A stretch of 64,000 nucleotides of DNA from Saccostrea echinata (GCF_033153115.1 NW_026889758.1:38874001-38938000); one strand, 5' to 3'; numbered from the stretch's first letter, positions 52,989 through 63,840 are shown. Made by a program: numbers and translations. Notes: generated from the letters alone by a model not told the origin.

Positions 52989-55900
52989 TCAATCGTTGAA
53001 AAATGAAATGGATTCCAAAGATGGGTCGTTTTTCTTTAAAATGTCAAAAGCATTTTTAAAAACCGAGCATACAACCAGATTTAACTTGGAATCGTGTTTA
53101 TTTTGCTTTTCTTCTTGCTTTTCTTCGTCGGAGTCAGATCTAGCCTCATATCTACCAGCGGTAAGCACAGCTATGACTTCAAGCTTTCTATCCCTCGTAT
53201 TAAACGATTCTCGAAACACTATGGAACCAGAGTCTCCCGGTTCACCGAATTCTTCATCATTCATCCCCTTAACTGCAATAATACCGTCTACATTCCCGAT
53301 GATTTCTGAGGAAACAATTCTACCCTGTGTCCATTGTGAGGATGCACCTAACTTATGAACAATGTCGTCAATGAACTTCAAACTGTCTTCCTCAGGAGAC
53401 ACTTCAGCCTTTGTTGGTTTTCCCTTGTGATTTAGGAGTCCCTTACTAGAGAAGGCTTTTTCTACCTCTTTATTAACTCCAACAATTGCTAAATCGCTTT
53501 GAATTGTTTGAATTTCTCCCTTTCGATTTTGAAGGCATCTTCCTACAGGTATTCGCTCATTTGATTCATGTTCTATATATACCGTACTGTTCTCTATGCA
53601 TACATGTCTGCATGATAATGCAACCACGCGCTCCTGGTTCAGTATTGCTAGACAGCCAAGAGTCCCATAATTGTCCTCCAAAAGTGACTGATACAGCTTC
53701 GTTCCCTGAGCTTGATATCCGGCAAACGGTTTGACTTGCTCTTTTAAATTTTGTTCAGTTATTACAACAATTTTACAAAAATCTGTTGAAGTCACTGTTT
53801 CAAATGCATTTTTTATATCAGATTCGTAACTTTCATCCACAATCACTCGAAAATCTTCGAAATGGAAGCCATATTTGACAATATGTTTTTTAAACCTATA
53901 AGGATGATAAAAAATATAACTTACTACAGTGTATAGTTTTTTTTTTTTTTTTACGAAATAGCAAATCTTTCTATAAAATTTAAAATAAAAATTGTGTGCC
54001 ATAATTGTAACATCTTATTTTCAGAAAATAGGTTATGGGCAATAACATTCAATTTTGAAAGCTGGAAAAAAAAAACTTTATAAAGTTTATATATTGGTTT
54101 CAGGAGAAGGTTGCAAAGGTCTAAAAATCCTTTGCAAATACTTGTAATGTAGTATGTATCCTTCAAAGTATTGAGACTTATTGACTTTAAAAATACATCT
54201 GTTGAAGTACATGGAGAGAGAGAGAGAGAGACATCTCACCTTTCCAAGATGATATTAATTTCCCTTGGAATTTCTCTCGACTTCTGTCCAGCCTTTATCC
54301 CAGGAAACGAAGAGCATTTTTGAATACGTGTAATGATGGCGTCACTGTCTGCTAGAAAAAGTGAATTCAATTTTCGATAGTGAGATAGTGTAAGATAGTC
54401 TATAAGAGAAAGCTCTAATGCTGAAGTCAGATTATCCCATACTGCATCTGCCTCGTGGAATACAACCGAGAAACGGCCGTCTTCCTTAAGCCTTGAGTAA
54501 TCTTCGCTTGATTCGGACTCCGATGTTACGAACACACACCATTTAGAGCTCTTGATAATTTTTTCCTATAAAGATTTAAAAAAAAATATTTAAAATAATT
54601 TTCTCTTAAATTGTTAAGTGTTTAACTTTTCAATGTTTTCCCTTTTTGCCTTCGGCGTTGATTCAAAGAATTACGCAATTTAAGCCAATTGCTTGATCAC
54701 ACCATAAAAAAAATCAAAAGGAGAGAGAGAGAGAGTTTATTACTTAAATAACATTTGATATGTAGTTGGCTTCAAGCTCGTTGTTTAGGTAGGGCAATAT
54801 CAGTGTTATTGACAAAGAACCGTTTTTAAATACCTCTGCTAAACTTTGGCTTCTGTTTTCTGCTCCATGGAAACCAATAAAATAAATCAATATTGCATGG
54901 CTCAGTCCCTGGGACGCTGTAACAGAAAGCGATTTAAATATAGTCATAAAGCAAGCAACTAAAATTTCAACTTTTTATTTTGCAGAATTTCATTTTAAAT
55001 GATTGTGACAATAATATATTCGGGCTTCCAGTTCGTTGTCAAATTAGAAAATATTAGAACAAAAGAACTATTAAATAATTATTTTATCAGTCTTACATGG
55101 GAATTCATTTTCATCAAGTTTATTAGCAGTCAGTGGCTTTAGAAGTTCTAAGTTGTCTGTTGTAACCCTTCCAGCGACCAGAATTGTAGCATGCAGAGCT
55201 TCAGATAGATCAGGAGTTATAACTTCACTGTTCACTGATTCTTCATGGTTAATTAGTTTTTGGACCAGTTCAAAATGATATTCGAACCTTGGAAAATTAT
55301 CTGGTTTAAACTTCACACGGTAAACAGGATGTCCAGAAAACACTGCAGAAATAAAAAAAAAAAAATATTTTATTCTGATATTTCATATATAAATAGGACA
55401 TCACACCTTGTTCCACTTAGAAACTCTATTTTAAAATGCACATTATAAAATTTTCTGGATGGTCTGTAGCCTGTTTGTCAACGTGTAACTCTATTAAAGC
55501 TGAAAAGTTGAATCAATTTTTGTTTGTCAATGCTTCCTTAATTTCGTTATTATTTTCAGTTAATTTGTTAATGTTATAAAATTTATATAGGCATATATAT
55601 TTAAATTCTTTCCATGTGTGAGACCTAACATGTTTTATAACAGTATTGTTAGGCCATTGTTTTTATACTGTTTGACTACAGATTGCTCCGTCTGTCTGAT
55701 CAATACATAGGGCTCACAGCGGGTGTGACCGGTCGACAGGGGATGCTTACTCTTATTAGACACCTTAACCCACTTTTAGAGTTTCCAAGGGTCCGTGTTT
55801 CATGCCTTGTTTACGAATTTGTATTGTTTTAAAGACTTGAGAGATCGATCACTGTTCGTTATTTTCACCTTTTTTACCTCACAGTACTTACAGATAATAT

Positions 55901-57124
55901 GCTCCTCCTATATTTCGATGACTGTCTATTGTATAACGTAGTCTACTTACCTTCCGATTATCTATTGTATAACGTAGTCTATTTACCTTCCACTGTTTGT
56001 TCGCCTTCTTCCTTCCCTCTTTTTGAGCGACGATATTGCTTCAAAATGTTTAAAATTGAAGGATAAGCATTGTCGTTCTCAGCAACGTCTAACGCAAAAT
56101 CTACTGACGAGTCCTCACCTACTGCTAATTGTAATTCTCTGAAAATGTCTTTGGTCAAGCTTAGGTAGTCAATTTCTTCAATAGTATCTACCTCCTCCAA
56201 TTTTTTTCTCAGATGCTCAATGCCATCTCTAACTTTTTTCCCCAACTGCAAAAATCCAACTTTGTTTTGCAGTGATGATGCTCTTTCTAGGAAATTAAAC
56301 AGATCTGTGTGGTAATTTTTCAGCTTTTCTAATTGTTTCATAATATTACTACTACTTTTTTCAAATCTCTGTTTTTTATCCCGGAATCCTGTTCTCACTG
56401 CATCAAAATTTTTTTCCAATGTATTCAGACACTGTTCTTTTAAGGCCTCTATTTCCCTGTCTGTATCCATTAGCTGACATTCTTGTGTGTCCTTTAATTT
56501 TTGACAGGATTTTATTTTAGTGAAATCGATCTGATTTAAATCATCCATCAGTGACTGTAGTATATTTCTGAATTCATGATCTATTGGAAAAATCATGTTT
56601 CGACAATCCTTGTGAGAAATTTCAAGACATTTTGAGCAAACTGCTTCCCCACAAAGCCTACAAAAAGATTCAAGTTTCTGTTTATGCTTATCACAATACA
56701 AAGGAGCTCTAAATGCTATAGATAGATTGTTTGACCACTTATTCAGTGGTATAGGGCTTAATTCGTGACTACTGAAGATTTTCATGTGATCGTGACAACT
56801 TAAACATTTTCTACATATCAGTCCGCACTCCTTGCACATTTTCACTGCTATCTGATCATTGCCTTCTTTACACTGTTCACAGTTCACTTCTCCAAATTGT
56901 TCAAATTTCAATATCTCAATGATGCCTTCATTCAAAATGAAATCATCCAGTGCTTTTGGCATATCCGCTCTACAGTTTGGACACCTTTGGTTAATTTCTT
57001 CATTTTCAAGAATTTTTAACAAGCATTGGCTACATATACTTTTTGCACAACAAAGCAGAAAATGGGGCTTCCGTTCGAAGAGCTCAAAGTCCAGACCACA
57101 AACTAAACATGACTGTTCTTCCAT
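52989..57124 (-). CDS. TRIM (RING-Bbox1-Bbox2-coiled coil) protein fused to a Nal1-like trypsin-fold serine protease; exons 57124-55987, 55342-55097, 54916-54753 (or -54834), 54565-54240, 53895-52989; ~899-926 aa
   Basis: RING CLVC..CCAKSICSQC..CPNC; B-box1 CEQC..CKEC..CRKC..H..H; B-box2 CDKH..CRLC..CSKC..H; coiled coil. Protease motifs GTLGC, LSCRHV, SDLAIV, VHKLGASSQWTQG and GDSGS. Splice phases 1,1,0,2 all match with no stop. The exon 3 donor is uncertain. Confidence 0.8.
55620..55875 (+). mobile_element. 3' fragment of a Penelope-like element in intron 1 of the TRIM gene
   Basis: gggtgtgaccggtcgacaggggatgcttactc...gggtccgtgttt, the same 3' motif as 30530-30610, 59480-59550 and 60960-61030. 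Confidence 0.75.
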
Positions 57125-59379: not shown

Positions 59380-60880
59380 AAAAAAGGGTGAAGATAACGA
59401 ACAGTAATCAATGAAATATGGAGATAACGAACACCAGCCAAGCTCAAAAGTCCATTAAAACAATACAAATCAGCAGAGCAAACACGGACCTCTAAAAACA
59501 TCAGATGTGGTATCAGGTGCCAAGGTGGAGTAAGCATTCCCTGTCAAACGATCGTGTGCTCCTTGTCATGATCTGGCAAAGTTCTAACGGAAAAATATGT
59601 CGACAATTCAGTGTGTAAATAATGGCCTTACAATTAGTATAAACATGTCTGTCAGCATTTGACTTAATGATAGATTGTATTTGATGACAAGGTCATTGTA
59701 TCGACTATAGAACTTGCCAAATATTGACTTTAAACGTGACTGTTGATATCCTTGTTTCCTCCGCTTGTTTGCCAATAGCTTGCCTCGTTTTAGAAATTGT
59801 TCATACATAGAGCATGCAATTGCATATCGAATCAACTGGGAGAATAAACTCAATATGCAGGCTATAAGGGTATATTGCTCAATAAATTAGGGAAGTTGAC
59901 AATAGAAAAATTTAAGTCATCACTTTTATCATAAACTTTTGTTCTTGGGTTACCATTACTGTCTTTTCTAGTAAAATATCTAAATATGAAACAGATGTGT
60001 AAGACTTTGTGGTATCTTTTATTTCAGGTTCACTTGGATATATCAAGTCAAGTCGACATATGAATGGAAGTAACTGTTGTTAATTGTTAATGCGTCGTCG
60101 ATATATCTAAATGTTGAAGGCCACGGCAAGTGTTTAATTATTCTCTTGTATTAGTTTTTGAATAAATTCTGATTCACATGAATACAAAAAAGTTACAAAA
60201 GGAACCCATGAGAATTCCGACAGATTGTTGGAAGACTTTAATTTCAAAAACTACAAAGACATTGTTATGAAAAACCCAAGAATCTATTCAATATCAACTT
60301 TGGAGTACGTGTGTGAACAATCAGAATGTTTTAAACAAAAAATTTTGCAAATGACCAATGACAAGGTAAGTAAATTTATAAGTTCCATTTTTATTGGAAA
60401 AAACTATCTGTCTATGATGTCAAAAACCTTTATATCATGGGGAATGTTTGGCAAGTGTTGAAAAATCATACGTTTTGATTTAGGGAAAATTTTGAAATTT
60501 CAAATTTATAAAACTTCCTTGGAATTTTTAGAATCCACATCTGAATAACATTATTTCGCGAATATATTGGTGTACAGTACTCATGAAGTTTTTCCTTTAC
60601 GGCTGTTAATATTTTAATTAGGAGCAAAGAAAGAGGCTTGATAGAAAATTTCCTGAAACCCGCTTTGTATCTTTGTAAGGATATTTATGTAGTTTAGGAA
60701 TCAATTATAAGTATGGTAATTCAAATTCAATTTGTTTTCGGGGATATTAAAAATTTTCAAAACTGAAATATGATTTTGAAGAATTTCCTCCCCAGAAAGG
60801 ATGTTATAGGTATAAGATGAATTGCCATTTCCAGAATTAAATCCTAGCTCCTTTGAAAAACGATTAAAATAATAAGGCTT
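59380..60880 (-). mobile_element. Penelope-like (Naiad-type) RT element, decayed
   Basis: SQLIRYAIACSMYEQFLKRGKLL..QQSRLKSIFGKFYSRYNDLV. Homologous to 63000-63840. Confidence 0.85.
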
Positions 60881-60929
60881 TATACAAACAAAGAAACAAA
60901 CAGTCTTAAAAATCTGGTGAACAATTCGA

Positions 60930-61720
60930 ATCATTAAAAGGACAAGAACACAAACTACTGGAAATTCCAGAGGTGGAATCAGGTGCCTAAGAGGAGTAAA
61001 CATCCCCTGTTGACCAGTCACACCCACCGTGATATGCATTGATTAGGTTGACGGACAAGCCAGTAGACAAATTTAATATAAAAACAATGACCTAACAAAT
61101 GGTATGAAACATTTCAGGCAAAATACGAAATGACCATTGTCAGAGGTTGCATTTAGAAAGTCATTATAATAACGACTATAGAATTTGCGTAAAGCTGATT
61201 ATAATCGGAGTTGATGAAATCATTATAACATTAATTTATTTGTCAGTAGTTTGCCTTGGTTTAAAAATTGATCGTATTCAGAGCATTCTCTTGCGTATCG
61301 AATCAGTTGGTTATGATGATGTTAAAATAATTTCATCCAGTTTAGTTACTAGTAGGTCCCAATTGTCTATAGTCAGTAAAGCATGCAAATATGAAACGGA
61401 TCTGACCTTCTCTGTAGTGTCTTTTATTTTGAGTTCACTGGGATATTTCGAGTCGACATCTGTATGAAGTAATCTGAAATTTCTCTTTGGCAGCAGTTAA
61501 TATTTTTGAAGCTTGGTTGAACATTTACTAGACTTAACTGCAATACATCTTTGTAAGAATTTATATGAAGTTTTGTAACACAGTGTTGGCACGGTAAATT
61601 AAATTCACTTCCATTGACTGGAATGCTTAACATGTTTAAACACTTCATCTTTCGGAAGGGAACTCTGGGTAAATGTTTGATTACCGGATGGTGAATTAAA
61701 CCAAGTTATAAATTATGAGC
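60930..61720 (-). mobile_element. Second, more divergent Penelope-like fragment
   Basis: 3' motif at 60960-61030, caactgattcgatacgcaagagaatgc (QLIRYAREC) on -, and tcgaaatatcccagtgaactc. Confidence 0.65.
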
Positions 61721-62999: not shown

Positions 63000-63840
63000 A
63001 TCTGCACAATCATAAACCCAGGACGAAGAGCAACAGAAAGTTTTTGTTATAAGAATTACATGTAACATGTTTATTAATTTACATTAAAAGTATTAAAAAA
63101 AATAGTAAATTTACTTACCTTGTCATTGGTCATTTGCAAAGTTATTTTGTGAAATAACATTCTGATTGTACACACAAGTACTCTGAAGTTGATATTTTAA
63201 AGATGCTTGAGTTGATTGACAATATTTATGTGGTTTTTGGAGACCAGGTCTTCCAACAATCTCTTGGAATTTCCATGGGTACCAATTGCGCCCCGTTGTT
63301 AGCAGATCTATTTTTGTATTCATATGAAGCAGAATTTATTCAAAATCATATACATGAGAAAAAGAAATCTCTTGTGACCTTCAAATCGACATTTAGATAT
63401 ATCGACAACATATTATCAATTAACAACAGTTATTTCCATTCATATGTCAACTCGATATATCCCAGTGAGCTTGAAATAGAAGATACCACAGACATATCTT
63501 TTTCATATTTGGATATTTTACTAGAAAAGGACGTTAATGGTAATCTAACAACAAAGATTTATAATAAACGTGATGACTTTAACTTTTCAATCGTCAACTT
63601 CCCTTACTAATGCAGCAGTACACCCTTATCACCTGCATATGAGGTGTATATCTCTCAGTTGATTCGATACGCAAGAGCAAGAGCATGCTCTTCGTATGAA
63701 CAATTTCTTAAACAAGGCAAGTAATTGACAAACAAGTTGATGAAACAAGAATATCAACAGTCTCGTTTAAAGTCATCATTTCGTAAGTTCTATGGTCGAT
63801 ATAATGACCTTGTCTGCAAATACAATCTATCATTAAGGTC
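63000..63840 (+). pseudogene. Penelope-like (Naiad-type) reverse transcriptase fragment
   Basis: GISMGTNCAPLLADLFLYSYE, FRYIDNILSINN and KIYNKRDDFNFSIVNFPY. Catalytic DD is mutated to DN and stops are present. Confidence 0.9.

Follow-up and report, generated by a model that had tools for sequence, protein, structure and literature searches.

The locus considered here raises the question of whether a TRIM-type scaffold can terminate in a protease and, if so, what such a protein would do. The gene in question, LOC133182349 of the oyster Saccostrea echinata, lies on the minus strand at positions 52,989-57,124 of a stretch of 64,000 nucleotides (nt) (GCF_033153115.1 NW_026889758.1:38874001-38938000). 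The whole of this stretch is referred to as the window, and coordinates are window positions unless another contig is named. LOC133182349 was found to be one intact nuclear gene encoding a cytosolic protein of 899 residues, in which an N-terminal TRIM-type module is followed by a middle domain and a predicted NAL1-like serine protease domain. The sequence itself is not new, being already annotated as "uncharacterized". The best explanation as a whole, that this TRIM-middle-protease gene encodes an effector gated by assembly, is given an even chance of being correct.

The coding exons were read from the genomic sequence and are five in number:

55987-57124, minus strand: exon 1 (1138 nt), residues 1-379 and one further nt; RING-like finger, both B-boxes and the coiled coil, then ~45 residues from the start of the protease-family core; donor GAAG/GTAAAT at 55987/55986.
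55097-55342, minus strand: exon 2 (246 nt), residues 381-461; first part of the middle domain with an FPRxxYHxxL motif; acceptor ending in CTGCAG, donor CCAT/GTAAGA.
54834-54916, minus strand: exon 3 (83 nt), residues 463-489; middle domain, 27 codons.
54240-54565, minus strand: exon 4 (326 nt), residues 490-597; remainder of the middle domain with an LTSALELxLI motif.
52989-53895, minus strand: exon 5 (907 nt), residues 599-899; small alpha/beta lead-in (exon residues 1-56), predicted Nal1-like serine protease domain and stop codon (52989-52991).

Together the exons sum to 2700 nt, corresponding to 899 codons and the stop. All four introns are of the GT...AG type with polypyrimidine tracts, and their phases (1, 1, 0, 2) are compatible. 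Borders and phases were recomputed, and the model of five phase-compatible exons given in a preliminary description of the window proved identical to the RefSeq model. Exons were compared one by one with RefSeq XP_061173144/45/46 (P0156; "uncharacterized protein LOC133182349", Saccostrea echinata, 899 residues), the full-length product being that of the database record. All five translations matched exactly, to residues 1-379, 381-461, 463-489, 490-597 and 599-899 of XP_061173144, with single-residue gaps at the split codons. An alternative phase-1 donor (AG/GTGAGG at 56119/56118) was ruled out, as orthologues and XP_061173144 retain residues 336-379.

An in-frame TAG (55981-55979) is located two codons past the exon-1 donor, and retention of intron 1 would yield a TRIM-only product of 381 residues. 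A 17-nt tandem repeat (3.4 copies, 55924-55983) occupies the very start of the same intron and duplicates the donor context, placing a second GAAG/GTAAGT ~39 nt downstream, behind the TAG. Intron 1 also contains a dispersed repeat of ~165-240 bp (55624-55862), with weaker copies upstream of the gene (59672-59834 and 60701-61039) and elsewhere in the locus of the second gene copy described below. The open reading frames (ORFs) at 55683-55832 (plus strand) and 60701-61039 (minus strand) have the peptide GVTGxQGM..RHL.P.LEFP in common, which suggests a single repeat family.

Evidence that the TRIM module and the protease belong to one gene was obtained from exon 1 and from other species. The end of exon 1 (residues 335-379) aligns to residues 19-60 of a stand-alone core protein of Magallana gigas, LOC105346292. 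The N-terminus of the core is thus homologous to sequence within exon 1, and a single exon holds both the TRIM module and the beginning of the core. The same architecture is present in RefSeq models of S. cucullata (904 residues), M. gigas (914 residues) and three neighbouring loci of Ostrea edulis (899-933 residues). The search of bivalve proteomes for RING, B-box and protease that had been recommended therefore recovers the layout in four oyster species and, together with the shared exon, upholds the fusion originally proposed. Logan contigs of 3.2-3.8 kb carry uninterrupted ORFs of 901-906 residues with RING and B-box. These contigs are probably transcripts, because the shortest of them are too short to include the introns of a 4.1-kb genomic span.

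The N-terminal module comprises four elements:

56972-57109, minus strand: RING-like zinc finger, residues 6-51, with C6, C9, C25, C26, C31, C34, C48 and C51; His ligand absent (CCAKSIC).
56765-56881, minus strand: B-box1, residues 82-120; Cys/His pattern and profile match to the MID1 B-box1 (2jun, E 1.3e-4; 2ffw).
56564-56701, minus strand: B-box2, residues 142-187; Pfam zf-B_box, E 3.4e-7, score 30.7 bits (cut-off 24.1).
56126-56563, minus strand: coiled-coil region, approximately residues 188-333; the 6h3a profile match pairs it with the coiled coil of TRIM28.

A profile of ten full-length orthologues was searched against the PDB and matched the RING/B-box/coiled-coil (RBCC) construct of TRIM28 (6h3a) with an E-value of 2e-12. 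The match covered positions 16-296, spanning the RING, both B-boxes and the coiled coil, and TRIM3, TRIM2, MID1 and TRIM32 ranked next. Searching the PDB with the single sequence gave weak matches to the RINGs of TRIM32 and CNOT4, the B-boxes of TRIM3 and TRIM2 and the B-box1 of MID1. B-box2 alone clears its Pfam cut-off; the RING and B-box1 were identified from profile and PDB matches. Within B-box1, C82, C85, C97, C100, C104, C107, H111 and H120 are near-invariant among orthologues, and in B-box2 C144, H147, C158, C163, C166 and C174 are invariant, with PDB matches to the B-boxes of TRIM3 and TRIM2.

Of the RING-Bbox1-Bbox2-coiled-coil order previously assigned, the B-boxes and coiled coil were thus recovered by Pfam and the 6h3a profile, whereas the RING is atypical, with eight Cys and no His. 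Its phmmer matches to the TRIM32 RING (E 0.008) and the C4C4 RING of CNOT4 (E 0.008) were weak, and Pfam RING models remained below cut-off. At the C3-x-H position His is absent from both Saccostrea species, from Magallana and from the Logan relatives, and CCHKSIC was found only in the O. edulis paralogues. Judged by sequence, the Saccostrea RING could represent either a variant of the C4C4 type or a finger that has been weakened. The protein begins MEEQSCLVCG with no hydrophobic leader, in agreement with the earlier statement that a signal peptide is lacking.

The protease occupies most of exon 5:

52992-53726, minus strand: chymotrypsin-fold protease domain, exon-5 residues 57-301, protein residues 655-899; predicted from the AlphaFold2 (AF2) model, VIA-align, Foldseek and the family profile.
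53604-53606, minus strand: predicted catalytic His (exon-5 His97, His695), codon CAT in LSCRHV; invariant in 80 sequences and aligned to NRHV of NAL1.
53493-53495, minus strand: predicted catalytic Asp (exon-5 Asp134, Asp732), codon GAT in IQSDLAIV; at least 90% conserved.
53229-53231, minus strand: predicted catalytic Ser (exon-5 Ser222, Ser820), codon TCT in FGEPGDSGS; aligned to F..EGDSGS of NAL1.

Relatives were collected by an exhaustive HMMER search of 1.84 billion representatives, which returned 83 sequences, of which 80 were aligned. His97, Gly220, Asp221 and Ser222 are invariant in this alignment, Asp134 is conserved in at least 90% of sequences, and the GTLG motif and VHKxGAxSxWTxG block are nearly invariant. 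Utilizing the alignment, AF2 produced a normal two-barrel fold for exon 5 with a predicted local distance difference test (pLDDT) score of 87.8, compared with 35 for a single-sequence run. The 80-sequence profile matched nine NAL1 entries in the PDB with E-values of 2e-12 to 1e-11, followed by DegQ/DegP proteases and a Streptomyces serine proteinase (2sfa) at approximately 1e-3 to 1e-2. NAL1 structures were also the top matches in Foldseek with the exon-5 model (E 7e-12). VIA-align superposed model residues 57-301 on NAL1 195-447 with a Z-score of 18.1 over 214 residues (19% identity); alpha-lytic protease and Streptomyces griseus protease B (SGPB) tied with NAL1, at Z 18.5 over 180 residues.

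Pfam matches at E<=0.001 were found among the relatives to Peptidase_S64 (26/80, best E 3.9e-10) and Nal1_C (20/80), the best score being 39.3 bits. Pfam Trypsin (PF00089) did not match the LOC133182349 protein, and phmmer with exon 5 alone found no match in the PDB. In the ESM Atlas the neighbours of the protease were Nal1_C/trypsin-like clusters from molluscs and bacteria, treated here as leads only. A complex prediction for three copies of exon 5, in which the alignment was not used, scored 0.00 and has no bearing either way on self-association.

The preliminary description had identified the last exon as trypsin-fold, with motifs of the plant NAL1 type and no IVGG activation motif. AF2, Foldseek and VIA-align runs on exon 5 gave a chymotrypsin-type fold, GTLG...RHV and VxKxGxxSxxTxG...GDSGS align with NAL1, the domain is internal and without IVGG, and the three triad codons were confirmed as CAT, GAT and TCT. 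Accordingly, the domain is placed among the clan-PA serine endoproteases, as a predicted member of the NAL1/Ssy5 (S64-like) type whose predicted His-Asp-Ser triad is intact. Plant NAL1 is, by sequence profile and aligned length, its closest characterised relative.

Between the two modules lies an alpha/beta middle domain of ~220 residues, formed by exons 2-4 together with the opening ~56 residues of exon 5, which had been overlooked previously. Exon 2, carrying the FPRxxYHxxL part, is conserved in orthologues and 90% identical in the second copy. A word-seeded search with the middle domain returned close orthologues only, and the ESM Atlas gave weak alpha/beta neighbours with TM scores of at most 0.5, which are not diagnostic. 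The stand-alone M. gigas protein (LOC105346292, P0175, 574 residues) is 43% identical to residues 335-899. In S. echinata, LOC133206106 (P0035, 1012 residues, contig C54) consists of an nSTAND3/AAA NTPase followed by the shared middle domain and protease (E 1e-27). The Ser motif of LOC133206106 is GDSAA.

When 19 distant paralogous loci were searched with orthologue-alignment profiles, at least 9 proved to have middle-domain exons immediately upstream of the protease exon, and none showed an RBCC exon within ~8.5 kb. The stand-alone and STAND-fused cores indicate that the mobile module is the middle domain plus the protease, which is found alone, behind a STAND NTPase or behind a TRIM module. 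On these sequence comparisons the TRIM fusion is placed as one ostreid lineage of the middle-plus-protease unit.

The family is large in this genome. At least 26 protease exons related to exon 5 are present in the 923-Mb S. echinata assembly, each a single open frame of ~300 codons, and only two of these loci have the TRIM module. At least nine of the paralogous exons lie within ~450 kb in a cluster on contig C27 (9.24-9.69 Mb). Middle-domain exons lie a short way upstream of several members, and no RBCC exon was detected for any of them. The relatives that carry names are from oysters, scallop, pearl oyster, Mactra and the brachiopod Lingula, and all are labelled "uncharacterized" or "hypothetical".

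The second TRIM-bearing locus (C24:1635000-1644999; LOC133191699, P0117) keeps all five exons; identity is 94.7% across at least 7.7 kb, a span that takes in introns and flanks. Its exon indels are in-frame only (9 nt in each of exons 2 and 4), with no stops or frameshifts, and protein identity is 98% for the protease exon and 92% for the TRIM exon. Synonymous divergence (dS) between the copies is ~0.05. The ratio of non-synonymous to synonymous divergence (dN/dS) is 0.27 for exon 5, 0.63 for exon 1 and ~1 for exon 4, from small counts. Exon 5 is under purifying selection. The second copy either arose by a recent segmental duplication or represents an unpurged haplotig.

In TRIM scaffolds, assembly proceeds by way of coiled-coil dimers and contacts between B-boxes, and STAND NTPases oligomerise; the protease core is thus attached to two kinds of scaffold known for induced oligomerisation. 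In the proposed mechanism the protease would be held quiet in a monomer or dimer, and higher-order assembly driven by the N-terminal scaffold would render it active. The protein would then be an assembly-gated intracellular protease effector, acting most likely in bivalve innate immunity or stress signalling. In rice, NAL1 is active only as a hexamer, assembly ordering the loop that carries the catalytic His234 (PMC12012508). For the oyster protein, activation by assembly would follow by analogy, and a role in immunity or cell death is plausible.

Several observations weigh against this mechanism or against the assignments beneath it. The trimer interface of NAL1 uses its ATP-binding domain, for which no counterpart was found by sequence in the oyster protein. 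The middle domain matched nothing in Pfam, and a sequence search of the PDB found no match to it, NAL1 included. The protease domain of LOC133182349 on its own scored 15 bits against Pfam Peptidase_S64 (E 0.009), below the cut-off of 23.6, and the missing canonical His ligand makes E3 activity of the Saccostrea RING uncertain. PADLOC defence models gave no match to the oyster protein, and NCBIfam gave no meaningful match. The argument for an immune role is drawn solely from how the family has expanded and from which types of partner it is fused to. Transcription and junction use at LOC133182349 are taken from RefSeq models and from other species.

A broader version of the assembly mechanism is offered tentatively and is considered rather unlikely. 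The bivalve module of middle domain and intracellular protease, unrelated to caspases, would serve as a plug-in effector for immune scaffolds (TRIM lattices in LOC133182349 and a STAND NTPase in a paralogue), switched on by pathogen-induced clustering and possibly with RING-dependent ubiquitylation. If true, this would constitute a new class of TRIM output, and animals would have their own equivalent of the protease effectors known from prokaryotic conflict systems.

The main alternative to activation by assembly is a self-ubiquitylation route of the kind used by Ssy5, and it is regarded as rather unlikely. In Ssy5, the S64 type member, the proteasome removes the prodomain in a ubiquitin-dependent manner, which sets the protease free (PMC6761765). 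Here the RBCC and middle region would form an inhibitory pro-region, the RING would respond to a cue by ubiquitylating it in cis or in trans, the proteasome would remove it, and the freed protease would cleave latent signalling proteins. The Peptidase_S64 matches in 26/80 relatives (best E 3.9e-10) and the position of a RING-type module where the pro-region would be are consistent with such a route. Against it, no autoprocessing site is recognisable from sequence, the Saccostrea RING is without its His ligand, and NAL1 is nearer than Ssy5 by both profile and structure. The core moreover occurs without a RING in LOC105346292 and with a STAND NTPase in LOC133206106, so ubiquitin gating can be no general rule for the family.

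Unlikely, too, is a housekeeping or developmental protease that trims transcriptional regulators in the manner of NAL1, with the TRIM module serving substrate recruitment or E3-coupled disposal and with no effector role in immunity or death. Many TRIMs have non-immune roles, as is well established, and the purifying selection on exon 5 would suit such a function. NAL1 itself cleaves the transcription factor FZP inside its cage and has a developmental role (PMC12012508). These points are set against the 26 or more paralogous protease exons in the genome, including the C27 cluster, the STAND NTPase among the fusion partners, and the confinement of the family to bivalves and one brachiopod among the named matches. 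Lineage-specific expansion and partner swapping are typical of bivalve conflict-related genes (PMC8195603).

A pseudo-protease, in which a catalytically dead or decaying copy is used as a binding domain like PRY-SPRY, is very improbable. The LOC133182349 domain does fall below Pfam cut-offs, and dN/dS for exon 4 is near 1 on small counts, but neither the triad nor the GDSGS oxyanion motif varies, both copies are free of stops and frameshifts, exon 5 has a dN/dS of 0.27 and the AF2 model has a normal two-barrel fold. Least probable of all is a gene-model artefact merging a TRIM-only gene (exon 1, ending at 55979-55981) with a separate protease gene: the in-frame TAG would allow the 381-residue product, but the first ~45 residues of the core family are already inside exon 1, the second copy and at least four oyster species keep the architecture, short Logan contigs bear contiguous ORFs of ~900 residues, and exons 2-4 lack an independent start and show only in-frame indels.

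The assembly-gated TRIM protease would be of interest in several respects. TRIM proteins are a major family of animal innate-immune sensors and E3 ligases, and to our knowledge the C-terminal module in the listed TRIM classes is always a binding or recognition domain. What is new here can be seen as a TRIM whose C-terminal module is of a new class or, just as well, as a NAL1-like protease of an animal that has acquired new partners at its N-terminus. A conserved TRIM ending in an apparently active protease would give TRIM assembly a direct enzymatic output, and the presence of the same core behind a STAND NTPase points to a reusable effector cassette in bivalves. Bivalves have very large immune-gene expansions and suffer economically important viral and bacterial mortalities. 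Intracellular proteases of the NAL1/Ssy5 type, so far studied in plants and fungi, would be extended to lophotrochozoan animals, and LOC133182349 provides a concrete gene with defined predicted catalytic residues (His695, Asp732 and Ser820). Full-text literature searches, whose coverage was incomplete and whose silence is absence of evidence, returned no description of a TRIM-protease architecture or of NAL1/S64-type proteases in animals. A search by LOC identifiers found no paper naming LOC133182349 or LOC133191699.

Elsewhere in the window, a 135-residue ORF at 63203-63610 (plus strand) resembles a retroelement reverse-transcriptase fragment, as read from its translation only. A 128-residue ORF at 43415-43801 (plus strand) encodes immunoglobulin-like sequence (...VTWYRNEV...YRCIVMNELG...).

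Among known systems, rice NAL1 (PDB 7y77, 8pme, 8pmg, 8has) is likewise cytosolic, without a signal peptide or zymogen activation motif, and of chymotrypsin fold. It has the motifs GTLG...RHV, VxKxGxxSxxTxG and F...GDSGS in common with the oyster protease and gives the longest structural alignment (214 residues). NAL1 differs in having an N-terminal ATP-binding domain, a C-terminal tail and a D3 hexameric cage (PMC12012508), whereas the oyster protein, from an animal host and ~19% identical, carries its protease behind a sequence-unrelated middle domain and a TRIM module. Yeast Ssy5 (Peptidase S64) is likewise a chymotrypsin-like signalling endoprotease that acts inside the cell and has a large non-catalytic part at its N-terminus, but it has no RING, B-box or coiled coil and acts in a membrane sensor complex.

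The TRIM/RBCC E3 ligases TRIM28, TRIM32, TRIM2/3 and MID1 have an N-terminal RING, B-box1, B-box2 and coiled coil in the order seen in the oyster protein, where the first element is a RING-like finger. The oyster protein departs from them in its C-terminal module, which is a predicted protease, and in its RING of eight Cys and no His. TRIM classes C-I to C-XI and subfamilies A-I include no protease C-terminus (PMC3503706), in line with the preliminary description. Alpha-lytic protease and SGPB, with a compact two-barrel core, equal NAL1 in structural Z (18.5 over 180 residues), but bacterial S1 proteases of this kind are secreted, have pro-regions and disulfides, and show no significant sequence-profile match comparable to that of NAL1. 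Secreted animal S1A trypsins possess a signal peptide and an IVGG N-terminus, both of which are absent from the oyster protein.

In the portion of Kaur et al. 2021 (PMC8195603) available to us, a TRIM-protease fusion is not described. The paper reports large lineage-specific expansions in bivalves of death-fold/TRADD-N proteins with B-box and STAND partners, and, for prokaryotic conflict systems, the repeated use of trypsin-like peptidases as effectors attached to STAND and similar scaffolds. The prokaryotic STAND and ternary conflict systems follow the same logic as that proposed for LOC133182349, a protease effector placed on an oligomerising sensor scaffold, and S. echinata has an nSTAND3 paralogue of its own in LOC133206106.

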